DNA of 64,000 nucleotides, from NCBI GenBank assembly GCA_965202585.1, contig OZ241829.1, positions 50,716,001-50,780,000 of the forward strand, read 5' to 3'. The position numbers and the translations under genes are program-made. Origin of the DNA: Thalia democratica. Its lineage: Eukaryota. The notes under the pieces were generated by a model. It made no database searches and had not been told where the DNA came from. It worked only from the letters and a program-made list of their open reading frames with translations. This document shows positions 1-54,800 of the stretch, piece by piece (the stretch's first letter is position 1; the number at the start of each line of letters is the position of its first letter).

Positions 1-830
1 TCTAGAATCTAGATAGTCTTAAATTAGATTGTTTTTTTTTTTACTTTCAAATTTTTATCTGTTTATTAATAATTTCATAAACGTATTCTTAAATGTTAGG
101 ATTAGTTGCTACACAAGAAGTCCTTACTAATTTATCTTGAAAACTTTCACTGCACAATATTTGCTGCTACAATTATTTTAACAGTTAGCAGAAATTGTTT
201 TCTTAATATTTATATTAATCATCTAAATAAAAAAAGATGAATATTGTTTTTAAAAGGTTTAAAATTACTTTTAATGAATTGTTTTTTTTTACTTTTGCAA
301 GTTTAAATTTAGACATTGTTTAATTTCGTTTACTTTTTATCAAAAGTTAGACCTAGGTAACCACTTAAACAACGTGACAATTAATAAAGAAACAAAATAA
401 AGAGTTTATAAATAAAATTACTAACTGAAGCCCACTTCATAACTTAAAAGTGTAACTTTTAATGAGTATTTTATTTAGTTTTGAAATGCTTAAATTTTAA
501 TAAATGAAGTATTTCGTCTTTTTTTAATTTTAGATAAAAAATAAACAGTTTAAGACAGTATAAACGTTTAAAAATGCGAATTAAAATACTATATTGCAGC
601 AACTAAATTGTTTGCAGCAAAGAGTCATAATGTTCTTAAACTTAAAACCTCAAGTATATTCAAAAATCAAAACGTGTGTTTATGACATCGCAAAAAGACA
701 TTTCATTTTAAAGTTAAGGTGTTCTTCATCTAGCGTAAAAAGTACAATAATTAAAAAAAAAACAAATAAAAAGTAATCAAGGTATTCATTAAATAAAGTT
801 TCTATTAATGTTTTTGACAAGACGTTAAAA

Positions 831-925
831 GGTATACAGGAGGTGCGACTCGATAACCGAAAGGTTGTTCGTGCACCAGGTTATAAGACCAAATATCTTA
901 AGCGTCTTTTTTTTCGTTCAATAGA
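831..925 (+). repeat. ~95-bp dispersed hairpin repeat, copy 1
   Basis: GGTGCGACTCGATAACCGAAAGGTT..GTGCACCAGG..CCAAAT..AGCG..TTCAATA recurs at five other places in the window. Confidence 0.75.
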
Positions 926-3686
926 CTATATGAAAAAGAACTTTAAACTAATACTTGTGCTTTACTTAACTAAAATTTTTAGTTAGCTTTTATAGCCATT
1001 ATTATATATAAAAAACTTTAGTTCTTTAAGTTTGTATATAATTTAATTGTTAATGATACTTAGATTTAGACAACATTATGATAAAACTCTATCACTTCGA
1101 GTATAAGTTATTGTTAGTGACACTTGACTTTATATAAAGTTAAACACTACCATAATTGAATTTTAAACATCGTTTGTTAGCAAATTTTATTGCATGCTAT
1201 AATTAATCAAAAACTAAAGTTTACATCTAGCTGGTGTTAAAACAAAAAATTAAGAACTTTCAAATGATTTAAAAGCTTAACTTTTTTTATGTTAAATATA
1301 GTTTTTGTTTAAATAGCTTAACTACTCAATCACTTAACTTCAGATGGATATAATTTTAAGATTTTTTTTTAAACTTGTTAAACATTACACCTGTAATTTA
1401 TCAAAAGGAAAATATGTTTAATGGTTATTAATAAAAATAACAAGTTTAAAATATGTTTCTTGCATACTTTGTGTTTAAAAATCAAAAAATGTTATTAATG
1501 TTTTGGTTATTTTTAAATTTTCAGACAACTTATAGTCTGTTTTAAAAAATTAGTTTACTTCGTACTTATTTAAACCTTAAACAAAAACTAAAGACTTTAT
1601 AAACACATTTTTGCAAACTTAAAAATAAACTTTGTTTGAAGAATTTTATCCTAGTAATTATAAATATATATTACCTTTATCATTTAATAACACAAAATTT
1701 TCATTTAATACAACTATTGTTCAAATTTTTAAACTACTTTTCCGAGAGAAAAATAGTAAATGTATATATGATTTTTTAAAATTAATAAAATACAATACTG
1801 TTTCGCTTTGAACTTGTATTAATTATATAAATTAATTATTATGTATTTTTACACTGTACAACCTTACAACTATGTTTAGTGTACTTAAGTAGGATCTATA
1901 AGCTTTAGTAAAAAAAATTATGGAGGATTTTAAAACAAATATACTAATTTAAAACTAGATAGAAACTATTGTCTTTTTGTAAGACTTTAAGAAAATAATA
2001 AAAAAATGAGGATCTAAAGTTTTTCGATTTCGAAAAAGCATTAAAACTTATCCAACTATTTCAGTTAAGAATTATATAGTCATATAGTCCTACTTATAAA
2101 TTTAAAACAGATGAAACCATTCCTTAAACAGAAACCGCTCAGTTCCAACCCGCCATCATTTCTCACCCGATTGATCAAGGGTAATGGGTAACATTAAAAA
2201 ATAAATAAAAACTAGAAAAAAAGAATAATAGAAAAATAAATAAACTAAGAAATTAAAATTATTTTTGGATGGAATTGTGCGCTGGTGGGAAATGATCTTG
2301 GGTGGTAATTGTTAGTATACCCCTTTAAAATTTGTTTAAGTGTTTTTATAAAAATAATCTTAAAAACTTAGTAAAAGAAACAAATAGAAAAGTTACTAAG
2401 AGCAAAAACATACTAATGGTATTTAGTTCTTTGTTGATTCTTGTATTACTAGAAAATAGATCAGCAAATGTATACAAACTGTAAATTTTCAATGCAATGC
2501 TTATTAAAAAAAAAGTAGCATTACAAGCCACATATTTTCGACGTCTGATCTAAAATACTTAACTTATTAGTAAAAATATTAGTACTACGATAGCTTGATA
2601 AAAAGTCTAAAACGTTAATATTTTTAAACAAACTAAGCAAAATACTTTAAGCAGATAAAGAGCAAAACTAATATACTTTTTGTGTTAGATATAAAATAGT
2701 CTAATGCTGTTTTGTTACTTATTTAATTAAAAACAAACTTAACATTGAACAAAATGTTTTAAATTAGAAAATATACTATAACAACACTAAAATTTGCAAA
2801 ACGTTAAAAAGTTTTGATACTTTTACCCTGCATAGTTATAATAATATAAATTTTTTTTTATTTGCAGTAATTAACCTACACTAAAAATTTTTAGTATTTA
2901 AAACAATTGTTGCAATAATACATATTTTAAAATAATTTAAATATGATGATTTAAATGAAACAAACAATGCTACACTGAGTTTATATTTTCACATTTAAAA
3001 AGGTAAGGTTGTGTATACTTTCAAATAAAAGTAACTTTTTTGTCAAAGTATAAAACAATTATTATAAAGATTTTTGTGACGGATAAAAAATATAAAAAAT
3101 CCACAGCTTTCTTGATGTTAATTAAACTACAAAATCCTAAAACAAAGCTAATCTTTCTAACATCGCACATCTCAAAAAACTTGATTAGAATTATAAATTA
3201 AATTGCCATGTTATATTTGTTACTGAAAATTTAAATAACTGTTATTATAGAAAGCATGTTAAAAAGCCCAAATATATTAAAAAAAACATATTATTAGAAA
3301 AAAAGTTTTCAAAGCAAAGAGTAAGAATGATTAAAAACTAAAACATTTACTTAAAAGTAACAAATTAATTGTTGTGTACAAAAAGAAAAAAATAAAAGCA
3401 AAACTAAGATTGGTAATATTTTTTTATTTCAAAGGTATATTTGTCTATAATTTTTTTTTTCAGAAACTATACGTTAAACTAGATTATACAACATAAAGCA
3501 TTTACAAAATTAATAACACAATTAGAAATATCACCAGGCCATTTTGTTAATTAAATTAAAACAACATTCATTAAGATAGGCACAAAAATCTATTTTAATA
3601 TTTCATTTAACGTTTATCACGTTTAAACCTTTATGCTTAATTAGTATTTTGACAAGTGTTTACAGTTTGTAATGTGGAAGTATTTT

Positions 3687-3884
3687 TTATTTTAAATGTT
3701 TAATAGAGACCGAACTCGTAGGTTTGTGAGAGCTTACATGACAACTTTTTCTAATCATTTCTTTGTTGATAGGAAGAAAAACTGTAAGTCTTTGTTGAAT
3801 ATTAACCCGACAAAAAGGACAGCTTTCAATTTGTTCTGAGCATGATTTACAACAAAGTTGGTGACCGCATGGAACAAATACAAC
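3687..3884 (-). CDS. MYLIP: MYLIP exon 8, RING and stop
   Basis: VVFVPCGHQLCCKSCSEQIESCPFCRVNIQQRLTVFLP..KHLK then TAA. Confidence 0.92.
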   Translation of the reverse strand, partial: VVFVPCGHQLCCKSCSEQIESCPFCRVNIQQRLTVFLPINKEMIRKSCHVSSHKPTSSVSIKHLK

Positions 3885-6800
3885 CTGTTAATTTTACAAA
3901 CATATATTTGTGTATCATAAACGCAATACAGAGTTTTTAAAAAGATACATATAGCCTTATATACTTATGCAATACGTAAAAGTTATAGTAATAATGTATA
4001 CATAAAAAGATGCTCTTTATTTGTATTCTTTAACAAAAAATTCAATTAAATTTGGTCATAGGATAACAAATATTTGCATACTAGAATTAAAACGTTTACT
4101 TCTTTATATGACAACTTGTACAAATAATAACAAAAATATAATCGTAGCTTCTTAAAAGTTTTCTAACTTAAATATATATTAGGAGACATTATATCTAGTT
4201 ATTATTTAATTTTAAATTTTCCAAGTAAATTTTTGATATTTTTAAGTGTTTAAGTTATGACTAGTACTTACTGATCAAAACACTTATTGATCAAAAAGTT
4301 TTATTATTTCAAAAACATGTGATTTATTTTCAAGTCACCTATACCCGAAAAGTACAACTCAATAACTATAAACTGTAATACTTATATTCAAATATTAAAA
4401 AATAATGAGAAGAACGAAGAAATTTAACTACTAACCTCTATCTCTTTGTCACAGCAGATATTACAAGTTAATGCCTCATTAATAGAGTCCACTAAGAAAC
4501 TTGTATCTTGACTAGACAGTATTTCAGATTCATTATTTACATTTTTTTCTACTTGTTTCATAGGCTTTCTTTTCTTTAACTTCTGCTGCTTTTTGTACAA
4601 AATTCTCCTCGCGTTATCATGTACCTCTCTTGCTGTACGTTGGATGTCAAACATATACTGTTTATCTATAAAAATTAACATTGGTCTTGAAATTTTAAAG
4701 TAGTACCAGCTTTTATTAAGGTTGACTCAATAATCTTATTTTTTAAAGAGCAAATTTTTTAATGATGATTGTTTTACAGTAATATAACTAAATTTTCTAC
4801 AAAGATTTAGTTAGAAAACTGACTCTATGGTAAAAGTATTACCTAAGGACTTAAACAAGAAAATAAAAAAATACATGAATATAAATTTTTAAAAGTATAA
4901 ATCCTTTAAATCTTCTTGAAACTGTATATGCGTAGTGTTTTGTTAACAATGTTTTTTAAGTTTAAATATCAATTGTTATACACAATTCTGTAGAGTTCAA
5001 AAATATTGTTAATGAACAACTTTGTAAACATTGAAACTTTAATTTAATTACATCACATTACAGTTCAAAACTAAATTAAAATATAACTTGTTGTTTTATA
5101 TTGTAATATCATTCATTTTATATCTTCAAAAAAGAGTTTAAGAAAAAGAAAACAACTATGGCTTTAAATCAAACATACAAACAAACCTGCATCAGGAATA
5201 TTTTTGGGTCGAAACAAAGCAATGAAGTGTCCTTTGAAGTCGAGTGAATGCTGATACCTTACATTGGGGTGAACTGTATCCCATGTGTAAAATGCCAGCA
5301 TCTCTGTAATTATCCTGTAAAAATTAAATTACTTACTAATAATTTGAAAACATCAAAAGAAATAACTCATACATAACTAAATATACATAAGGTCATAGCA
5401 GGGACAAAGATATTTTTAATAAGTTAATATAGTCTTTATTTATTAAGTACAAACTGTTAGAAAACTTTTATAGAAAACTAAAAATTTAACTATTTTGTGA
5501 GACCTAATATTTTTTTCAATTTTTTGATCTTCAAGGAAGCTTTTCACAGCTATTTTTTACACCAAAATTCTATGATTTAACTAGAAGTATATCTTCTCTA
5601 AATTATACTTAAACTTTTCTAACTTTTAGGAAACATTCTTTGCATGATTATAGAAAATAGTTTGGTAGCATTAAAAAAAAAACAGGCTTTGTACGCAAAA
5701 TATTTCAGTTTTAGACTGACATTTTCTTAACTCTTGCTTGGCGGCGCCTAGTTGGGCTTGTAAGCAGATAAAACGACGTAGCCTATTAGTTTTGTTGTAA
5801 TGGCGTAGACTATTAAAAAAGGACTTTTTGATTTTTTTCAACTAAAATTTAACTTTTTACATATAGCCCTTTTAAAATATCATAAAAATTTTAGTTGTTG
5901 GAGCTTGTATTGTCATGTAACTACTACAAAAATATTTTAAAGTTTACTTTCAGATTGCTAGTTCATAAATATTGATTTTTTTAAATAACTTCAACTACAG
6001 CATCTTTTTAAGCTTGAAATAAACTTATTCTTTTAATAAAATAAAAGGATAATACAAAAAAAAAAAGAAGGCTGCTACTAATTTAAAGTCGATTAAATTT
6101 TGTTCCGACAGAAATTTTTTTATTTAGATTTAATTTTCAGAAAAATTCTAGAATTTGTACTGACAAACCCTGGTTATTGCCACTATTTTCTTGATTTTAT
6201 TAAAATAAATGTGCTAAATAACTTTTTTGGGGTAAAAAATTTAAATAAAAAATGTTGACAAATACACTGCATTTTTTATTAAGTATAAATCTTTTTAAAA
6301 CACACTTATCAACTACTGTGATTTATTTAAGAAAATAAAAATTTCTACTAAACAAAAAATGCAATGTATTTGTCAATATTTTGTATTATGATAAATGTTT
6401 AATACATAAACCAATATTTTATTTTAAAAGACATTTACAACTTAATAATCTACTAAAAAAAGAGATTTTAAAACTTTTCACAGAAATTCATGTTTTTAAG
6501 CACTTGAAATTTCAAAAACTGACAATTTGATAATATTGCCAAAATAAAACTTATTAGCCTGATGAGTATAAGTAATTAATTTCAAATATACATCTTTAAG
6601 AGTATAACTAAAGTGATAAAATAAAAATATTCAAACAGTAAAATTTATTTTTACTAAATAACAATAAAGAATAAGATGATTTCAAAAGGATTGTTTAAAA
6701 ACTAATTAAACAGTTTTTCAAACGAATAATTTAAATTATAGAGAAAAAATTTAAATTTATATTGTTTATCGAAGTCTAAATAATCATATATTTTTACAAT

Positions 6801-42800: not shown

Positions 42801-45800
42801 GAGTAGACAGGTACAAGACAATGAACACATAAAACAGCGATTAGTTGAGAAGGAGTGTTTACTAAATGATGCTTGTAAACATAAACAAGTTGTACAAGAT
42901 GAATGTGAAAAGTATAAACATCAACTTACAATTGTTAGAAATGAAGTAGAACTAATGAGAAAAAAAGCTGATGATGAAGTTTGCGATGTTAAAAAGTGTG
43001 TTTTCGACTAATACTTAAGATATTTAGTATTAAAGTTGAAAATAAACATTAAACAAACTTTCAAACTTGAAGAGTTCTTTAATATAGACCTACTTAAAAT
43101 GTATTACCACTAAATTAAATGTACATATTTATACTTACAGAAGTTTACAGAAAAATAAAGAAATGTTTGTATGTGAAAAACAAAAACTTCAAAATTCTCT
43201 TAAAGAATCTAAAGATATTTTAAAGAAAGTCAACTGTGAAAAGGAAAAGACTAAAATAAATTATAAAAAGTTAGTTTTGTAAAGAAAAGTAGGAACTGTA
43301 TTAATTTTTTTCAGCATTTTATATCATACAATAGAAATTTGAAACCACTTAAAATTTAATTATATCAAAGATTAAAAGTAAGCTGCTTCAAGAAAATTCA
43401 AAATTTGTGCAATGAAAATGAAATACTTAAAGCAGAACAAGAGAAGCTTCAAATTCAAATTAAAGCCGGAAAGTTGGTTGTATATATTTAGTAAAACATA
43501 AAACTCTTTATGTGTAGTTTGAACGTAGTAATTTAAGCTTTCATACTTGTTTTAGATTGAGCTTAAATACTTTCCTTTATATTTAGGTAAAATTGTGAAT
43601 TAAAATTGTTAATAAATAAATAGTTATAAAGCAAGTATAAAATACTGTAAGTTTGTTAGTATAATAAGTTTTTTTTTAATATTGAACAGTTTTATACTTT
43701 CTACACTAGTTTAAATATTTTTTTTAGAGTAGTAGTATGTGTTTTTTTATTATAAAAAAAGAATCATGTTTTCTATTTTGGTTTTGTAAATAAGCCATTT
43801 ACAGTTGTTTTTAGTGATCTGCCAGATACAAGATCCTAATTTTTTTTTAAATAACCGGATCCGGTCACATCCTAATGTTATGGATCCAGTAGATCAATGA
43901 ATTAACTTTACTTGTTTCAGCTCCTTCCAGTTTTTTAAGAAAATTGTAGAATATAAAAGTGTTTACAGATCTTTAGCCCCATATTAGTTGACGAAAAAAT
44001 ATTTAGAGTTTTTTATCTTGAAACTTTAAAATAAGAGAATTTATGATAGTTTCTTTATATTAATATAAAGAAAAATTATATATATATATTTATTTATTTG
44101 ATTATATAAAAAACAACGTATTATATAATTATTATAATCAAATAAATATTTAGCTCCAAGATTTGTTTTATCAAGTTAAATTATCAAGTTTTTACGCCGT
44201 TAGTCGGAATAAAGTTTTAACACAAAAACATCTGTGGTATATATATGTATGTAAAGAAATAAGTTGATTAACTTAATAAATAAATTTTTTCAACACAGAG
44301 CCCATCTTAAGGGCTTTTTAAAAAAATAAAGTTTATTAGAAAACGTAAAAACTTGCAGAACTCAAGTTTCGTACCTACGCACTCCTCAACTGTAAAACAA
44401 GCTCAAAATAAAGTACAAAACAAAAAATTCAAACGAAAGTTTAAAATTTAAGCATAAGTATATTATGACGTAGATATAAAACTGTTAAAAATCATGCAAA
44501 ACGGCCTGTACAAAAATTATCTTCCCAATCGACAATAAACTGGCAAAAGTTCATAAAACTTCAGTGAGTAACTACAAATTTGAAATGAAATTTGAATAAG
44601 ATAAAAAGTTAAATAAAAATAGAAATTTAAATTAATATAAAGCGAAATCAAAACTTATTAAACTGTAAAAGCGATTTTTTTATATGTCTACAAGACGATA
44701 CAAACTCGCTTCTTTTGTTTAGGCAGGTCTTATCTTTCAGTGCATACACAAGGCTGTTGCTTCTTTGAGACACAGGCTACATATCGGGCTATTGCCGTCA
44801 GCTATAGACTGTGCTCTTTTTATAACTTCCCAAGATATTTCAAAGTCAATGCCGCTGTGGCTCGGTCTTTGGCAGTTAAAATATACTTATTATTACAAGA
44901 TGACTCATTTAAAGGACCGACAAGATCTATGTGAACAAACTGGAATCGTTCCGTATTGTCTGGAAAAAAACCAATTTTTGGACGATTATATCTTGTTACT
45001 TTGGTCGCTTGACATACCACACAGCTTTTGACCCAATGAGTCACATCTTTTATCAATGTAGGCCAGTAATAGTCTTTTGCAATAGACTCGATTGTTTTAT
45101 CAATTCCCAGGTGCAACCTATCATGGGCCACATTAAATGCTGTTAGGCGCATAGATTCGGGCAGAATGATTCGCTTATTATTTTCGTCTACCACTACCGC
45201 TAAATTATCTGGTTGTAAATATTCGACCGTTTTCTTCATATTACGTGCGGTATCTACTAGCCCCGGTTCATTACATTGCAAGACCGCAATAACTTCCCTA
45301 TTTATCATATTAAAGCTAGTCGTATTTTCCCCGATCACTTCATTTAACGGACTACCTAAAATTTCCTCTTCACCGTCTAAATCACCGTAATCAGACTCGC
45401 TGTCTTCAGCCTCTGACTCAGACGTATAAACAAAATCAGAATCCTGGTTATACGCACGAACATGCATTGCCGACTGTGGGGGTCGGCTTAAACTATCTGC
45501 TACTACATTATCATGGCCATCTATATGCCTTACTATTGGATTAAATTCCTTGATTGCGCATATCCAACGTTGTTCCGCTGGAGAATGATTACCCATTTCG
45601 TTTTTAATGGCCCTTTCTACTGATTTACTATCAGTACGTATTATTAAGGATCTCCCCAATATTCTGCTTTGAAAGTGCTTAAGAGACAAATACACCCCGC
45701 GAAGTTCCTTATAAAAAGTAGAACGTACTTGCTTAAATGGAGGGAGCTTTTTTGAAAAAAACGCAAGCGGTTGCATTCCCCCATTTCTCCCTTCTTGTTC

Positions 45801-48800
45801 CAGAACTGCGCCAACGTGACTGTCGGAAGCGTCCGTGAAGAGAACTAGGGGTTTTGTGTGGTCTTCATAGCTTATTGTTGCTGCTTTAACTAACAGAGCT
45901 ATTGTGTCATGATAAGCTTTGATTTGGCCATCAGTAAGTTTAATAATTGCCCTATTGCTTGCCTTAGATCCCCCCGAAATTTCATTAAGCGGTGCCATTA
46001 CTTCGGCCAAGTTTGGTATGAATCGATGATAGTAATTAATCATACCAATTACCCTTTTTAACTCTTTGCGCGTGTTTGGTAAGGGTAATTTTTTTATAGC
46101 TTCTACCTTAGATTCCATAACATCAACCCCGTCAACACCTACTGTATGACCTAAAAAATCTACCTTAGTTCTAGCAAAAGAACATTTTGCTTGATTTAAA
46201 AATAAACCGTTTGTCGATAATGTTTCTAAAACCTGTTTTAAATGTGATATGTGACTGTCCGCGGAATCTGAAAACACAAGAATATCATCTAAATATACAA
46301 AAGTGAAAGCCCCACAAGAGGACAAGATACTGTCCATAAACTGCTGAAAACGTGTTGGCGCATTCCGCAACCCGAAAGAAGTCACCTTAGGGACGAATAC
46401 CCCGGAATTAGTTATGATAGCAGCATATTTTCGTGAGTTTGGATGAAGAGGTAAGCTATGGTAAGCTTCTTTAAGATCTAACGTGCTGAAAAAACGGGTA
46501 CCTCCCGGAATTCTTTCCGAGAGCGTATCTATGCGCGGTAGCGGGTATGAAAATGGGCGTGTGTGGGCATTCAAAACTGTATAATCAACACAAATACGCA
46601 AATCACCATCTTTTTTGGGCACTACCGTGATTGGTGATGCACACATGTCGGCATCCCCCTTTACAACAGCACCTCTCGCAATTAGGTCTGAATAATTTTT
46701 ATCTACCTTTTGTTGACAAGTTAAATTACATCTTCGCGCCTTAATCATTCGCGGTTTATAATTGTCAACTATAATTTCTAGAAAGTGGTTGTGTTTTCTA
46801 GGAGCAGTATAATCAGGAGTTTTTGTAAGCTCAGGGTAATTCAACAGTAGTGCTTCACACTTGGTCTCTAACGTAGCTATGTTATTACTATCCTTAACTT
46901 CCCCCGTATTAATTGACACAACTACCGACGCAGGCAAGTCAGCGGCCCTAAACAGTTTAGTCGTTTTGTTAGACAATTGATGCGTCAATTCTAACGTGAA
47001 AGGGCATATTAACAGTTTGTTTGACATTAAAATGTCCATACCTAAAATGCCATAACTCCTATACTCTTGAGTAACCCAAAAATTATGTTTAATGGTTTTT
47101 AAATTACCTAGCTTAAGGTCAACGCAAGCACTCCCTATGGGGTGGATTTCATTGTCGCCAATACCCTTTATAGTTCTACTGAACGGCTTAAAGTAGTGGT
47201 TTATGCCATTTGTTAGATTCTTAGGCAATATAGAAACTTCACATCCAGAGTCAATTAAGAAAAGAACGTTTGTAACATTGTCCTTTGCAAATAATAGACT
47301 TTGAGGCAAGGTTTTTGGATTTATAGACGATTTATTTAAATAGCAAACGACCAATTAGTTTTTACAGTTGGTTTTGTCGTGATATCATTACGCAATTGAG
47401 AGTGAGAGTTTGTTTCAGGTGATGGCTTTTTAGGCTGCCATGGTTTGGCAGAGGGACGAATTGGTACGGATTCTACAGGCTTATTAAGAGGAACTCTGTT
47501 CCCATCCTCATGTCCTCTCATTGTTTTGAAGATGGGAAATCGTTTTTTTGATCGTGTTGTTGCCGTAACGGGGACATAGGGCAAGTTGAAACTGCAGCAC
47601 AATAGTCTGCCCTATCTCCAAACTTTGCATGTTTGTGACAAAGCGCGTTTTGTTCGTAATTCGTGCGCTTGTTATACCCTTCCCCGAAATACCCCTGACT
47701 ACGACTGTGTTCATAGCTGCGGAAATGTTCCCTTTTTTGTGGAATGTTCTCATGCCATTTTTGTTTGTAATATCTCTTATTGTGCTTAAATCGCTGAGGT
47801 TCGTATGAAAAGTTTTTAGCATTTTCAAAGACCCTCTGTTCTTCAATGTCGCATATAAATTCCGTGCGCCTAATAAACTCATTATATTCAAGCCCAAAAC
47901 ATTCCTTTATTTTGTTTTTTAAATTATTAGGGGCATGTCTGTGCATAAAGTATTTAATTCTGTCTTCCTCTTTAGACTTTGCCCATTGCTTAGCTGCCAA
48001 AAACAAGTCCTGGAATTGAACTGGCTCTGGCCATGATGGGCTTGCACCTAATATGCGAGGCAATTTGCTTCCTTTCCCTTGTAAAAAGTTAACAAGACTG
48101 CTATACGTTCTGTCTTCGTCGTGTGTTTCAACGAAGTCAATTATATCTGAACGGGGCCAAATTCTCTGGAGAATTTCAAACTTCTCCATTTCAGATGTTA
48201 TACCATAAGCCGTACACCGGTCTTCAAAAAAACGTAACTCCACAGCCGGATCGCGTACGGCATCAATTTTTTGAAAAAGCTTACAATTTTCAAGAGTTTT
48301 TTTCTTGAAACTTATTTGTGTTGACATTTCACCTAAAGCGTGCGAGGTGTGATTGTTAAGGGTGAGGCCGCTGTCATTTATGGTCTTATTGGTATCTAAT
48401 CTTCTATAAATAGCTTTTAGTTCATTTTTTAGTTTATTTTTTTTCTCTAAAACCTTAGCTTGCTCTAGTAAGTGAGCTAAATCCTCAACGTCTAAGTCAA
48501 CTTCATCTAAAGCATTAAAATCTACAATTTCATTATTGTCCCTAGTCTGCGCGCTTACTTCTGTTTCATGAGCGCTGTTTATTGTCGCTTGAATATTGCT
48601 GGGAGATTGTGAGTTCGATATCAAGTCAGAGTCGCCATTGAAGTCAGCAGATACTGATGGCTCAGTATCTGCATGACCCGTTAACTTATTTTTTTGTCTT
48701 AAGCCCTTCTTAGTCTTAATCATTCTAATGGTATAGTAATCACTTAAATAGTAGCTTAAACTAAAAACAACCGGTTATAATTTACACAGCACAGTTTAAT

Positions 48801-51800
48801 CAACAATATTTAATAACAAATGTGATTTAAAAAATACGTATTAACTCAAGTAAAATTATACAAAAAGTTGATAAAGCTAAAGGGTTTCTTGTAACTATGC
48901 CGATCACAGATAAGAAAGCTTTGACTGTCAGGAATGCTTTTTTTCAATGCTGGGTTGGTCCATTCGGGGTCCCTCAAGTTGTTGTTTCTGATAACGGTCG
49001 TGAATTTGTTAACACCGTGTTAACCGAAGCGTTCGAGCAGTTAGGAATAGATCATCGTTTGGTATCCCCATACAGCCCTCAATCTAACGGTTTCATCGAG
49101 AGGCAACATAAGACTATCAATGTTGCACTTCGCGCGTTATCTGATAAGACAAACTGGGCAAACCGCTACGCTTTAAGCCACAAACATACTTTGAAAGCTC
49201 AGTGTCATTTTTATATATGCTGCATTTAAAATATTTTTATGATTGGCATACCTGAATCTGAACTGAGTCGAGTACAAGCCGATTTAGAACCTCGTCATAA
49301 CGTCAGAGTTAACTGTGGCCCTGTAAACGATGTTCTGCGAACGGCAATCGCCCCCTTTCAAATGATATTTACAGCCACCAGCGCAACCACATTGACTCTG
49401 AATTTCTGAGTTTTGATTTCAAAATATTTTGGTTGTGTGCTTTGATGATACTCTCTAAATTTGCCGTACACGAATAATTTATTCCCATATTATGTTTGTT
49501 GAAAATTTTTGTTAGCGGATTTTGTTTATTGAAGTGTTTTAGGACTGGATTTATAAATTTTCTTTGATTTTACTGAATTGTTAAAAGATGGGTTGTACCA
49601 TATTACATTTCTTTTTCTTTTGTGTTTTTGATTAGTTTTAGGTTGTTACTCAGGTTTTTCAAATTTAAGTTTATTATCGTAGCCGCATTTTTTCATTATT
49701 TTTACATATTCATCTTTAATCTTTAAAAAATTTTCTTCTTTACTTGATCGTAATAAAAAGCCAGAAGATTTAGGTTATACAGCTAGTCCATCGTCTCTGT
49801 ACAACACAACTCTATTTAAACCAAAGATATATTTTAACCCGTCTAAAAATAAAGTCCCACAAGTTCGCATAGCTCCGCGCCCATATAAGGTCCCTGTGCT
49901 ACGTCAAAAAGTGAGTTAGTGTTATTTACTCTCTTTTTGCTGCACCGAGCTTATTGTTTGCAGAGTACCGATTTGCAGGCATTTATTATCAGGGTTAAGT
50001 CCTCAGCAGGTACGCTAATGTAACTATTAGCAAAATTCAATGATTTAATCACCAACTCTTCGCTAATAGAAGGATAATAATCGAACTTAAATCGAACAAT
50101 GTTTTCCAAGAATACCTTCAGCAAACCACAAGTTTCTTCGTAGATCAAGCCTGAACTACACATGACACGGCCCGACGAACCAATCGACGAATGGTGGGCT
50201 TGGTGATACCCTTGATGTTATTACAAAGGACTTTGCGATGACGTTTGGTGCCTCCTTTTCCCAAACCTTTTCCTCCTATACCACGACTAGACATGATGAT
50301 GATTAATCGTCCTGTTCTAAATGTTGAGCAATTGCTTATCAGTTCTATTCATTGACACGTTTTATGATGTACTAACCAACCGTGAGCCATCATTCTGCTG
50401 TTGTGCTTGGTGACTGCTTTTGTACTTTCAGGGGACGGTGTTTTTAGCCAACTAAGCGACAATAACATACGAACAGCAGTTTAAATTTGCGACTGCTGAT
50501 GGTTTAAAGCTTGTTGTAGTGAGCCAGGGAGAAGCCTGGGTGAAACTTCAGCGGCAATAGAAGAGATCCTGATGCTTATGGTCTTGCTGAATATACCAGT
50601 GTCGGTGTGTACTTGCTTGAGCATATTGTACATGCAGATGCTGAAGCTTTTCTTGCGACGTGATGCGCTTCTTCTTGCCGTCAGCTGGGACATTATTTAC
50701 GGCGTTTTTTGCTACTTCTGCCATTGTGAATGAAATGAAGCCTGGGTGAAGGAGCCATATTGACAGCGAATTTTCAATTCTGGGCTCAGTTGACCCGAAC
50801 CATTGGCAAAGTAGTTCACCACTGAAAGTTTCTCAGTTTAAGTAAATTAACGTATGTGAAAAAGCGAGTTTTAATGTGCAAAAATTAAAAATAAATCACA
50901 AGTCTTTACATATTAACTATCAAACATTCAAAAATGTTTTGAAAAACGATAATATTAATTAAAAAAAATCACAAAAATCTATAATTAAAAAAAAAAAATA
51001 GATTTTTAATAGTCTAATGAAATATTTCAAATAACTTTTAAAGAAACACCATTAAAGGTTGTAAAAAATAAACTGTAAGTTTCACAATATTTGGCGTTCT
51101 GAGAGCTGTAGAAAAACAAAAAGTTTGAAGTTGCAAAACATAATTAAATTTGCATTTTATATTTTGTTAGCAAAAATTCTTTTTCATATTATATTAACTG
51201 AGTATCAAACTTAATAAAAACAAAAAATTGACATTTTAACTCAAAAACAATTTAATAATGTTTAACTTGCTAATCAGCAACCATCTTTGACTTAAAAATC
51301 AAAAATAAGTTTTTAAAGTTTGTGTTTTTAAACTCACACTTTACAATTTTCACTTGTGGACAATTCAGTTAATGGCTGCTATCATCAGGCTTAAGGAAGA
51401 AAACTAATTTCATTCGTCGCAACCAGTACTTTCTGCATAATTTATCACTTCTCTCCTTCTAAGGTTATACAGAATTTCTCTTGTAATTTTACCATCACCT
51501 AAGTCTGGATTATCACGAGGTATGAAAGACTTAACATTTCTAATAGAAACTTTCTCTACTCTATTTTTATTAGTATGTGCATACTATGTTCGGAGGTGTC
51601 CAATACTTCGTATGGCCCGTGATATAGGGTATTTAATTTTTTTTCTTTATCCGTTTCAGCCAAACCCTTTTACAAGTGACGGTGTAGGTTCATAAAAGAT
51701 GTTATAGTTCTTGTAATACTTACGTTTCTTACAAATGGTTGTTATAAATTTAAGGAAGAGCCGCATGTCTGCTTCTGAACAGTTTATTACTTCCCCCTGG

Positions 51801-54800
51801 GTTTTGTTCATAAATATCTGTCCAGGTGAATTCACACACGCTCCAAGTGCTTATTGTGATAGTCTAAATAGTGTCCTCTCTATAGGGGTATGATTTAGCT
51901 ACTGTTGTTATTGGCAATCTTAATGCCCAGTTTGTCTTGATTGTTTCTGTACGAAGAAATTTGTCACACGATGCTGGCGCTCAATGAGTCCACTTGTTTG
52001 GGGACTGTATGGTGATACACTTCGATGTTCTATTTCCAACTACTCACAAGCTTTTTTAATTAATTTTTTTATTGATTGTTAAATTCTCTTTTATTGTTGC
52101 TAATAATAACTTGTGGGATTCAAACGTGCCCACACCAATGCGTTTTGTATTGTTTCTACCTGTTTGTTTGGTATCGGAGCAGTGACTAAAAAATGTGCCG
52201 CGATCATTCATTGTGAGATGTTTTGTTGTTCTCTGAGGCTACATCCATTGAGCCAACAGTGTCAATGTGCACGACCAGGAAACGTTCATTCCGCTGAGGA
52301 AAAAGTCACATTTAGGTTTATTGTGACGGGTTATTTTGACAGCTTGACACTCCACGCATGACCGAGTCCAATGTTCGACATCTTCTTTCAAATTCGGCCA
52401 CCAGTAATCCTGTGCAACCATAGTTGTGGATTTGACTATTCCTAGTTGTAGTCGTTGTTGGGCTATTTTAAAAGCATTGACGTTGCTTGGGGAGGCTGAC
52501 TGAGTGCATCAGCGACGATGTTTTCTGATCCTGGTATGTGTACCATTTCAGGGTCATACTGTTTGATTCTTTAAAGATCTCTTTGTTTGATGGTAGTTGG
52601 TCTTAAAGCTCGTTTCTTTCTGCATTTACCAAATCTGAACAATGAGATCTAATAATGAGTTTTGACCAAATTTTCTAGAATGAAAGTGTTTCATACTTTA
52701 AGAAAGAGCTCAAAGTTCTTTGTAGAAAACAGAGCGTACCCTAGTTAGCCTTGGTAGGCTTCTCGAAAAAACGCCAGAGGGACTATTTTCCCATCTTCTT
52801 TCTAATGCTCTAGAACTACCCTAAAATGAGTGTCAGAGGCGCCTGATGACAATATTAGGGGTTTGTTGTGATCTTTGTACTCTAACGTTGCTGCCTCAAC
52901 AAGTGCAAATTTTTGCATTTTCAAAAGATCGCACATGTGCTTCCTTCAGTTGTAGTATTGTCTTGTTAGTCTTTTTGGGCTCCCTGAGATCTCGTTCAAT
53001 GGTGCTGTTATCATTTTGGGGATAAACTTGTGGTAATAGTTTATTAATTCTAAGAACCTTTTTAGGTCTTTTCGGGTTAGCATTACAGGGTACTCCCTAA
53101 TAGCTTGAACTTTTGCACTTAAGACGTCTATTCCGTTGACCCCAACACAGTGACCAAGAAATTCAAGTTATGGTTTCGCAAAATCGAACTTTGATGTTTT
53201 GAGAAACAAACCGTTATGAGATAGTACATTTAATCCTCTTTTCACAGTTGTGTTCTTCTTCACTTTAGGAATAAATTAAATGTCATCCAAATAGACATAT
53301 TTAAAACTTTCACAACCTTTTAGTAGGCTTTCCATCTAGCTCTGAAAGCGCATGGGGGCATTTTTCAGCCCAGATTGACAACGTGACGGAATAAATATTC
53401 TATTGTGAGTTATCACGGCTGCATACATTCTGGAATTAACAGCTATAGGTAAGCTAAAGTAAGCCTCCTGAAGGTTCAAGTTTGTAAAAAAACTGGTCCA
53501 CTTGGAATGATAGCAGATTACTCATCGATTTTTGAAAATAAGTAGCATAAAGGTCGTGTGAAGGAGTTTAATCTGGTGTAATCCACACAAACTCTTAGAT
53601 CCCCGTCCTTCTTTTTACACACGTGTCCCGACTACCTCGCTTGACATTTCGCTTTTATAATAGGTCATTGAAATGCTCTATTTCGGGTTGTAGTTATCCA
53701 CCGCAATCTCAAGAGCGTGATTGTGTTTTGGACTTCGTTGTAGTCTGGCTCTCTGGTGGTTTCTGAAAATGCCTCTACTAGTTTCCTACATTTCTCTTTT
53801 AATGAGGAATATCCTGGCCAGTTACCGCTAACTTGTTAACTGAGACTACCATATTTGTAGCCATTTGGATAAGACATTTTGGCTACTGTTTTTGACCCTA
53901 TTTCACATAATTCTGCTGAAGCCGGTGATATGTTTACACGATGGTTCTTCAGTATGTCTAAACCATGGTTTCCTGGTAGGATCCAAAAAGTGTGCTTGAT
54001 GGTGTCTAAATCGCCTAGCTTAAGGGTAATATCGGCGCTACTACGCCTCTTATTCCCTGAATTGTTTTAATTTGAGGTGGGAAATATCTATTGACTCTAT
54101 TTGTGAGCTATTTAGGTAGAACTGATAGTTCATTTCCTTTATCCACCATGAACACCACGTTGCTGTTGGTATCTACTACAAACTGTAGATTTTGTTGTAG
54201 GTCTTTGGGGGGTCGATTGTTGGAGTCCTTTTTTACTGTAAATATCCATTTTTATACTTTACTCTACTTTGTATTAAGCACTGTCTTTAGCTGTCTATCG
54301 TTGATTAACTTTTGAGTAACGGAATGAGATTTTTCTGCATGCTGTCTAGAACTTTTAAAGTCAGAATTTTTTCTTTCATCATTCACAGCAAATGTGTTTT
54401 GGCTTTTTTCCCCTCTGTGGTCTGTACAATGCTTCTGAAATAATATATCTAAAATGTACTTTATTTATATTTTTCACAACTGTATGTTGACTTTGTTTTC
54501 CCTTTGTATGCATTACGGTGCTCTCTGGCATTATAGTTCGATGTAAATAGGGTGGAGCAGTTTGGCTGGTTTTATCCACAGCTTTTGATCCAATATTTTG
54601 ATTACTATCTTCACCAAGTAAATTAGTGCTTTTGTCTCTTGTAGACGACAATGTTCTTGAAATTTTGGAGACTGGGATTAGCTTATTGGTTCTGCTAGGC
54701 ATACCAGTCTTTGAGAGAAGACATTTACCCCCATTCTCTGATCCTTTCTATGTGAGGAGGACGGTTTGCCGTTTTTTTTATTTATATGGCGCAATAATAT

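Follow-up and report, generated by a model that had tools for sequence, protein, structure and literature searches.

Gypsy sequence inserted without LTR termini as an inverted and a direct piece in Thalia democratica: probable repair of a staggered break by reverse transcription from both ends

A 4,306-bp block derived from a Gypsy retrotransposon lies between two copies of CCGCT inside an old Penelope-like repeat of Thalia democratica (assembly GCA_965202585.1, contig OZ241829.1). The block consists of an inverted 5′ piece (segment A) and a direct 3′ piece (segment B) that are contiguous in the parent element. We favor, with a probability of roughly 0.55, an origin in which reverse transcription of one Gypsy RNA from both ends repaired a 5-nt staggered break in a dead Penelope-like copy. 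Coordinates are those of the window, the 64,000-nt stretch of DNA that was analyzed (Table 1).

Table 1. Features of the inserted block and its host repeat
Feature	Position	Strand	Basis or remark
Host repeat, 3′ part (decayed Penelope-like; GIY-YIG-type C-terminal end and 3′ UTR)	44238..44856	-	Paralog homology
Left target-site duplication, CCGCT	44852..44856		Single copy in paralogs
Segment A, Gypsy reverse complement, LTR position ~311 to mid-integrase	44857..48878	-	Parent alignment
Integrase H2C2 zinc-binding domain	44997..45161	-	Pfam PF17921, E 8.5e-18
RNase H	45543-45935	-	Pfam RT_RNaseH_2, E 5e-22; RT_RNaseH, E 3e-19
Reverse transcriptase	46140-46622	-	Pfam RVT_1, E 9.5e-33
Aspartic protease	47034..47270	-	Pfam Asp_protease_2, E 1.8e-4, below curated cut-off
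1-nt pol deletion	47337..47338	-	Relative to parents and all read contigs
gag ORF, 401 aa, intact	47518..48723	-	ORF; starts inside LTR, reads through primer-binding site
Primer-binding site TGGCGACTCTGAC	48625..48637	-	1 nt past LTR end
Last ~240 nt of 552-bp LTR, presumed R-U5	48639..48878	-	Parent comparison
Two A residues at inversion junction	48879..48880		Filler, or U3 -1/-2 of CTTT-type source LTR
Segment B, integrase core (GFLVTMP..NWA), 279 nt	48881..49159	+	Pfam rve, E 3.6e-8
AAA filler	49160..49162		Absent from parents
Right target-site duplication, CCGCT	49163..49167		Single copy in paralogs
Host copy, upstream part, GIY-YIG-like motifs, 5′ truncated	49168..49751	-	Sequence motifs

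The sequence of the site before insertion can be read from paralogs of the host repeat. When the two flanks are joined with one CCGCT, the resulting sequence aligns ungapped across the junction, at 85-92% identity, with no fewer than 17 paralogs of the flanking repeat, and all of these empty sites read ..GTCAATGCCGCT(G/A)CGCTTTAAG.. with one CCGCT each. Because the uninterrupted paralogs have a single CCGCT, the block is a precise insertion with a 5-bp duplication. In line with the original prediction, CCGCT is found on both sides, and excision of the block together with one CCGCT restores the Penelope frame on the minus strand. This continuity is local, since the upstream part of the host copy retains ..IVYRATV.. 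and a stop codon replaces the Y of YIGL, with a frameshift just upstream. One paralog of the host repeat also carries a CCGCTA variant. No empty allele was present in the assembly at 0-1 mismatches. The target sequence, AATG/CCGCT/ACGC, matches neither the TTTT/AA site of L1-type endonucleases nor the AT-rich sequences that Penelope-like endonucleases are reported to prefer (PMC11167929).

The host copy itself is old and dead, as seen from its stop codon, its frameshift, and its identity of only 83-88% to its paralogs; the 3′ part matches more than 40 genomic paralogs at 82-88% identity. The motifs ..VYRATV..YIGLT.. are visible by eye in these paralogs, and protein-atlas neighbors carry the GIY-YIG domain PF01541; Pfam searches gave no GIY-YIG match for the host repeat at E≤1 and no RVT match for paralog ORFs with ..LYRDDGL... 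Contig word depth is 46,000-75,000 for the Penelope-like family, compared with about 1,500-1,900 for the Gypsy family. The block is younger than this diverged host, being 99.6% identical to young parents over segment A, and host and block were therefore not made together.

The donor belongs to Ty3/Gypsy, its Pfam domains showing gag followed by pol in the order PR-RT-RH-IN. Its full-length parents are 6.2 kb long, with LTRs of 552 bp that have TG..CA ends, a TGGCGAC primer-binding site past the 5′ LTR, and a purine tract ahead of the 3′ LTR. Segment A corresponds to positions 367-4391 of the C8 copy. Its length is 4022 nt, but a source LTR with CTTT would extend it as far as 48882, giving at most 4026 nt. 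Its nearest sampled parents, L002/L003/L031/L032, are 99.6% identical to it, not 100% (12 substitutions and two 1-nt deletions). U3, the integrase C-terminus, the polypurine tract, and the 3′ LTR are missing from the block; the integrase core starts just downstream of the H2C2 domain and is cut at 44857. The block had been predicted to lack LTR, primer-binding site, and poly(A), and to contain intact ORFs. Poly(A) is indeed absent from its ends, the right end lying inside integrase and being followed by AAA only, and no LTR terminus (TG..CA) is found at either insertion end, but some 240 nt of LTR and a primer-binding site beginning TGGCGAC are present. Similarly, gag is intact, whereas the deletion in pol leaves a frame of 91 + 832 codons, compared with 1181 in the parents. 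A near-identical 401-aa Gag (100% as printed, not an exact match) occurs in a marine metagenome contig, and the exact Gag sequence of the block had no match in the public record. The representative of the near-identical Gag cluster lies on a DNA metagenome contig from Tara Oceans; as U3 is part of this contig, it is uninformative on the transcription start.

Segment A has its 5′ end within the LTR, between -4 and +1 relative to a pyrimidine-purine step. Downstream of this end lie two ATTAAA motifs at a distance of ~65-85 nt (within 48792-48817) and a GT-rich stretch at ~110-120 nt (48758-48772). Judged from sequence, these motifs are what an R region would contain, and a transcription start at or near the end of segment A is plausible. 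Tf1-like self-priming was considered as another way of locating the RNA 5′ end and was rejected, as hand analysis found only 6 nt that pair, which we attribute to chance.

Segment B is 100% identical to L002/L003/L016/L031 and directly continues segment A in the parent. As originally predicted, the two pieces are contiguous and share only AG: in the parent, the minus-strand piece ends ..GCCAC(AG) and the plus-strand piece starts (AG)GGTTT, so that parent positions ..4390/4392 and 4391.. meet. This adjacency is found in at least 20 parents, and no nucleotide has been lost at the boundary. Relative to the target 3′ end that it adjoins, each piece is antisense, so that one sense-strand template suffices to account for both pieces and for the exactness with which they abut.

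Microhomology had been predicted at both outer junctions. It is present on the left, where AG is shared with the target (3 nt, CAG, if the target carried G), and is lacking on the right, where the integrase frame had been expected to run on as AACCGCT. Beyond 49159, GGGC|TTTGCATTTGCC is the continuation in every parent and every read contig (parent, GGGC|TTTGC), and the right junction has a 3-nt AAA filler instead, which with its neighbors reads CAAAC and repeats the CAAAC at 49150-49154. At the inversion junction the sampled LTRs are polymorphic, 18 reading CTTC|AGC and 12 CTTT|AGC, and depending on the variant carried by the source LTR this joint has either a 2-nt microhomology or a 2-nt filler.

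We propose that the left end of the break (..CCGCT-3′) annealed by a 2-3 nt match (AG or CAG) to the integrase-core region of a Gypsy RNA and was extended for ~4.0 kb, reaching the 5′ terminus of the RNA inside the LTR or stopping just short of it. Synthesis from the right end, preceded by three extra nucleotides, would have begun on the same RNA 279 nt downstream of that first priming site and would have continued up to the position of the first primer. The two cDNA 3′ ends could then have been joined by the AG microhomology or the 2-nt filler, and the remaining gaps filled in. The expected product is a target-site duplication, an inverted 5′ piece, a direct 3′ piece, and a second target-site duplication, made with no involvement of integrase and containing no LTR termini. 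The boundaries of the insertion, its duplication, the contiguity and polarity of the pieces, the microhomologies and fillers, and the relative youth of the block are direct observations; that the template was RNA, in which order the steps took place, and which polymerase acted are inferred. RNA is the likely template, as segment A ends inside the LTR at a plausible, putative start site; that extension ran to the RNA 5′ end is a reading that depends on this putative start. The twin-priming geometry of the original prediction is thus retained, with its duplication, inverted 5′ piece, and direct 3′ piece. Its suggestion, one of two, that a non-LTR or Penelope-like reverse transcriptase acted in trans is not supported; the polymerase could be the element's own reverse transcriptase, a Penelope-like or LINE reverse transcriptase acting in trans, or a repair polymerase. 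Capture of LTR-element fragments without LTRs at breaks, with microhomology and occasional short duplications (PMC4516963), and of Ty1 cDNA and replication intermediates (PMC11372161) has been described. The Gypsy family's own duplication, measured at a nested solo LTR in L023, is 4 bp (AGAG; n=1) and sits at TG..CA termini; its difference from the 5 bp and non-LTR ends seen here counts in favor of repair by reverse transcription. Counting against it are the right junction, which lacks microhomology and has a filler resembling an end-joining signature, the absence of poly(A) and of an endonuclease-type target motif, and the failure to find a second such event.

The strongest competitor, although we consider it unlikely, is a DNA-level event in which a linear Gypsy cDNA or a chromosomal copy suffered three breaks, one in the LTR, one in the integrase core, and one 279 nt beyond, and end joining ligated two adjacent fragments into a filled-in staggered break; in another version, a broken end copied the donor by microhomology-mediated template switching (MMBIR/FoSTeS). 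Microhomologies of 2-3 nt and a 3-nt filler repeating the nearby CAAAC are typical of alternative end joining, multi-fragment captures of retrotransposons at breaks are documented (PMC4516963, PMC11372161), and the transcription start of the Gypsy family is putative. Such an event, however, requires three donor breaks and three joints. No nucleotide is lost at the boundary between segments A and B, and a DNA-level event explains neither why segment A ends in mid-LTR at a plausible start site nor why both pieces are antisense to the primer ends that they adjoin.

More doubtful is cross-class mobilization, in which a non-LTR-type complex (Penelope-like or LINE) nicked both target strands and carried out target-primed reverse transcription of Gypsy genomic RNA in trans. 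This is a narrower version of repair by reverse transcription from both ends, for which a dimeric Penelope-like protein is the foremost candidate. The purified protein cleaves and extends both DNA strands and initiates reverse transcription internally on RNA without target homology (PMC11167929), Penelope-like insertions often carry an inverted 5′-truncated copy (PMC8557442), and the family is, by the word depth given above, extremely abundant. On the other hand, the target is neither AT-rich nor ATT-like, the purified protein needs a motif of its own RNA (PMC11167929), the block has no tail, pseudo-LTR, or poly(A), and the event is single. The A/B junction pattern is unique in the genome. A genome screen for further LTR-less Gypsy copies had been suggested earlier; in a search for copies that begin at this LTR position and are preceded by foreign sequence, with a pattern expected to detect about 56% of such junctions, the present locus was the only match. 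Nor did the genome yield poly(A)-tailed processed Gypsy copies ending at the predicted R end.

An assembly artifact in this repeat-rich region is very improbable. No contig of the public runs spans the junctions, but an assembler would create neither a precise target-site duplication, nor the exact contiguity of the pieces, nor private substitutions over the whole 4 kb. In searches of public runs, the share of words recovered from the junction-rich stretch never exceeded 0.79, about what family words alone give. Logan contigs from four runs continue at 44855/57, 48881/82, and 49159 solely as the parents do, and others represent paralogous empty sites; divergence of the contigs sets in at about 48638 (the 3′ LTR/flank boundary) and at 48882 (U3), and this comparison of contigs, not reads, gives no verdict on the junctions or the empty allele. 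Joints in run X10 that appeared to skip the block, and might have been taken for an allele, have 24-25 nt on one side and multi-copy depth, and we assign them to contigs of Penelope-like paralogs.

Insertion of a full element by integrase followed by inversion and two deletions, already disfavored originally, is effectively excluded, since on each side the duplicated target is met by sequence from the interior of the element. A 5-bp duplication is within the range of Ty3/Gypsy integrases, but three later breakpoints would have to match the duplicated target on both sides and the A/B boundary exactly, the family's one measurable insertion has a duplication of different length, and what is left of an LTR is 240 nt of a single copy, internal to the block and lacking a terminus. 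Autointegration is ruled out, the inversion junction not being at an LTR terminus. A template switch onto Gypsy RNA during retrotransposition of the Penelope-like copy itself can be dismissed: although Penelope-like reverse transcriptases yield complex tandem and inverted products (PMC8557442), the host is old (83-88%, with a stop codon and a frameshift) compared with a block 99.6% identical to active parents, and segment B would need an antisense template.

Most likely, the locus is a single case of a known kind of repair and not a new system, and it leaves the understanding of the element families unchanged. It is nevertheless a clean natural example in which the pre-insertion sequence can be inferred, the arrangement of the pieces speaks for priming at both broken ends, and the locus suggests that the transcript or a replication intermediate of an LTR retrotransposon can enter the germ line without integrase. 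If the template was RNA, the block marks the transcription start of the Gypsy family, and twin-priming geometry is not specific to the L1 machinery. Should more such copies exist, they would provide a measure of how frequently breaks are patched by reverse transcription in T. democratica, and if cross-class mobilization were true, twin-primed LTR-less retrocopies would be a regular, rare by-product in Penelope-rich invertebrate genomes.

Several known systems share parts of this layout. Processed pseudogenes of endogenous retroviruses made by LINEs (HERV-W type) are integrase-free copies of LTR-element transcripts that start at R, have an R-poly(A) end, and are flanked by L1-type duplications. 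The present block resembles them in that an LTR-element transcript would have been copied without integrase from R and not from the LTR end, and it differs in ending inside integrase with no poly(A). Penelope-like insertions (PMC8557442, PMC11167929) likewise feature two extendable target strands, internal initiation, and common inversions, but these are inverted repeats of the element's own sequence, whereas the present block consists of two pieces of a foreign element that do not overlap. L1 twin priming, known from 5′-inverted L1, Alu, SVA, and processed-pseudogene insertions (PMC2912911), has the same duplication-flanked layout of an inverted 5′ and a direct 3′ part, the parts meeting at the same template position with an overlap of a few nucleotides and the second priming site showing microhomology; unlike those insertions, the present one has an LTR-retrotransposon template, an internal 3′ end, no poly(A), a target other than TTTT/AA, and a duplication of only 5 bp. 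Break repair by reverse transcription or cDNA capture, as described for mouse MuERV-L and MaLR (PMC4516963) and yeast Ty1 (PMC11372161), similarly leaves fragments without LTR termini at breaks, with microhomologies of 1-7 nt, short fillers, and occasional short duplications, independently of integrase. The reported captures are mostly single fragments of less than 1 kb or unrelated multiple fragments, whereas the 4.0-kb and 0.28-kb pieces described here are adjacent on the template and opposite in orientation.

The 4,306-bp Gypsy-derived block lies between two copies of CCGCT and splits an old, probably Penelope-like repeat, the host copy, of which more than 40 genomic paralogs were scored at 82-88% identity. 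When the block is removed and the flanks are joined through one CCGCT, the minus-strand reading of the host continues, as the original prediction had stated, and this reconstructed empty site matches at least 17 paralogs end to end at 85-92% identity, ungapped at the junction. Every aligned paralog contains a single CCGCT, in the context ..GTCAATGCCGCT(G)CGCTTTAAG.. Because the paralogs cross the empty site without a gap and carry one CCGCT each, the boundaries of the insertion are real. The CCGCTA variant of the window is also present in one paralog, so the A at 49168 is probably ancestral to the host copy. The target duplication is probably 5 bp and would be 6 bp only if base 49168 had mutated after insertion. 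No empty allele of the insertion site was found in the assembly.

Features of the insertion and its host repeat (window positions; parents are full-length Gypsy-family copies in the same genome)
Feature	Position	Strand	Remarks
Host repeat	44238-44856 + 49168-49751		Interrupted by the block
CCGCT, left copy	44852-44856		
CCGCT, right copy	49163-49167		
Segment A	44857-48878	minus	Reverse complement of parent positions 367-4391
gag ORF	47518-48723	minus	401 aa
PBS	48625-48637	minus	Within segment A
Segment B	48881-49159	plus	Parent's next 279 nt, forward

Segment A starts 240 nt before the end of the LTR (LTR position ~311), runs through the primer-binding site (PBS), gag and pol, and ends in the integrase core at ..LTAKDRAT. 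Its minus-strand pol frame encodes protease, RVT_1, RNase H, and the integrase H2C2 zinc domain, and the integrase core (Pfam rve) is encoded on the plus strand from 48881, in segment B, which is 100% identical to four parents. The last bases of segment A (..CAC-AG) and the first of segment B (AG-GGTTT) adjoin in the parent, and at the left junction the CT of the left CCGCT could account for the AG as well. The site of the inversion junction is polymorphic in the parents (CTTC/AGC in 18 sampled LTRs, CTTT/AGC in 12), so the AA at 48879-48880 either belongs to the LTR or was added as a 2-nt filler; if it belongs to the LTR, segments A and B would overlap by AG. At the right junction, the window reads AAA and then CCGCT, whereas all parents and all read contigs run on as GGGC/TTTGCATTTGCC, which contradicts the AACCGCT microhomology proposed there. 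With its neighbors, the AAA forms CAAAC, repeating a CAAAC nine nucleotides upstream, and it may be a small templated filler. The block lacks U3 (about 310 nt), the 3' LTR, and some 1.0 kb from the 3' part of the internal region, where the integrase C-terminus and the purine tract lie. Overall, the layout described in the original prediction was largely correct, but not its right-hand microhomology, nor its claim that LTR and PBS are missing, since part of the LTR and the PBS lie in segment A.

Over its 4022 nt, segment A carries 12 substitutions and two 1-nt deletions relative to the closest of the sampled parents (99.6% identity). The deletion near 47338, which is found in none of the parents and in none of the contigs of four public sequencing runs, divides pol into 91 and 832 codons. 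The block, though young, is not pristine.

The genome contains at least 20 full-length copies related to the block, at 96-99.6% identity. The parent copy on contig C8 is 6.2 kb long, with terminal repeats initially measured at 610 bp; the true LTR length is 552 bp (TGTAACG..GACTTCA), judged from a nested solo LTR and from the sequences flanking 25 further LTRs. This solo LTR lies in opposite orientation within a full-length copy (L023:4056-4608; C10:15028043-15028596) and is flanked by AGAG, a 4-bp duplication, making it the family's sole insertion with a reconstructable target. The parents have a purine tract upstream of the 3' LTR, TGGCGACTC.. one nucleotide past the 5' LTR, a gag frame, and a 1181-codon pol frame, and this domain order and these features identify the donor as a Ty3/Gypsy element. 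The first 85 nt of the gag ORF lie within the LTR (window 48639-48723), and the ORF continues through the primer-binding site; gag of yeast Ty1 likewise begins within the LTR and crosses the primer-binding site.

In the parents nearest the block, L031/L002 (C8:40454988-40461283) and L032/L003 (C6), the 56 nt upstream of the 5' LTR, including the polypurine tract, are the same as those upstream of the 3' LTR, suggesting recombinants or copies arranged in tandem as LTR-internal-LTR-internal. No target site duplication is visible around the C8 copy. A derivative of about 3.6 kb that has LTR and gag but no pol occurs in many copies (more than 15 scored, among them L025-L030; for example C7:23322815-23326420, C6:53474909-53478509, and C5:45429367-45434920), with 96-97% identity to window 47485-48882, and has the appearance of a non-autonomous element related to the donor family. 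On the window's own contig, an inverted partial copy of the gag region (C5:45431265-45431608; 89% identity) adjoins a short element of the same family (C5:45431622-45433020) head-to-head. The 5' flanks of L004 (C24) and L005 (C10:14856848-14863877) are identical, and wherever one of these copies differs from the block, the other differs in the same way; contig C24 (176 kb) probably represents either a haplotig of the C10 region or a recent duplicate of it. A Tara Oceans metagenome contig (L054; PRJEB4352) encodes a Gag scored, as printed, as 100% identical to that of the window, with clearly diverged LTR sequence upstream (for example AGCTTTAAAAAC versus AGCTTTATCAAC in the window).

On both sides of the block, the strand continuing from the 3' end of the target carries antisense sequence of the element, and both of these tracts converge on a single template position. 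This polarity and shared meeting point are the expected product of two primers acting on one sense-strand template. The left primer (..CCGCT-3') would anneal to AG (or CAG) within the integrase core and be extended toward the template's 5' terminus, the right primer would begin 279 nt downstream and end at the site of the first, and both 3' ends would then be joined. The far end of segment A falls in the middle of the LTR, at -4 to +1 relative to a pyrimidine-purine step, with ATTAAA signals about 65-85 nt and a GT-rich element about 110-120 nt downstream. This position and these R-like signals favor an RNA template, with R presumed to start at the far end of segment A; a DNA break placed at random upstream of the integrase breakpoint would reach such a place in only a few per cent of cases. 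In 801 Mb, this locus alone matches a pattern of the presumed R start with non-U3 bases before it, and a search for copies with a poly(A) tail at the predicted R end found none.

The main rival to twin priming on RNA operates at the DNA level: two neighboring fragments of a broken cDNA would have been captured, or repair would have proceeded by template switching. The very short microhomologies and right-junction filler are typical of such repair. As to the enzyme, the geometry of the original interpretation stands, but its non-LTR or Penelope-like reverse transcriptase acting in trans on Gypsy RNA is unproven. Three points speak for that proposal: a Penelope-like protein, when purified, cleaves both strands, extends them, and begins reverse transcription at an internal site without target homology (PMC11167929); inverted 5'-truncated copies are frequent in Penelope-like insertions (PMC8557442); and Penelope-like copies are very abundant here. 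Three others speak against it: the target is GC-rich rather than of the preferred AT-rich kind, the purified protein requires a motif of its own RNA, and the insertion has neither tail nor pseudo-LTR. A full insertion followed by rearrangement is very unlikely, as three breakpoints would have to match the duplicated target and the A/B boundary exactly. Integrase is excluded as the inserting activity, because no insertion end is an LTR terminus and the duplication is unlike the family's 4 bp (one insertion measured). Joint origin of block and host copy in one Penelope-like retrotransposition is excluded by the much greater age of the host copy. An assembly artefact is unlikely, because an assembler would not make a duplicated target with exact template contiguity. 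Both families are present in public runs (Logan contigs; marine metagenomes and three coded organisms), and at the junctions the contigs of four runs show only parental continuations and paralogous empty sites.

The host repeat is likely a Penelope-like element. Its intact paralogs contain ..VYRATV..YIGLT.. together with a CxLC motif at the C-terminus, and language-model neighbors carry PF01541 (GIY-YIG); Pfam gave no significant match to the repeat. The host copy in the window is dead, with a stop codon replacing the Y of YIG and a frameshift ahead of the insertion point. In three public runs (X6, X12, and X10), contig word depth reaches 46,000-75,000 over the Penelope-like flank (44600-44760) and about 1,500-1,900 for the Gypsy family, so the repeat is extremely abundant in the organisms of those runs. 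Histone H4- and H2B-like pseudogenes (49757-50760) adjoin the 5'-truncated end of the host copy; since 49757-50097 is shared with paralogs L043, L044, and L046 at 88% identity, histone-like sequence travels with several repeat copies. A second, degenerate Gypsy-like pol of a different, older family lies on the minus strand at 52239-53479; its short ORFs contain fragments of RT, RNase H, and the integrase zinc finger.

The support for two-primer copying of a Gypsy template comes from one locus, and the processes involved, twin priming and RT-mediated break repair, are already known. The logic proposed for the block is that of L1 twin priming, and the same logic underlies the "direct RT" break repair proposed for MuERV-L fragments at breaks (PMC4516963).
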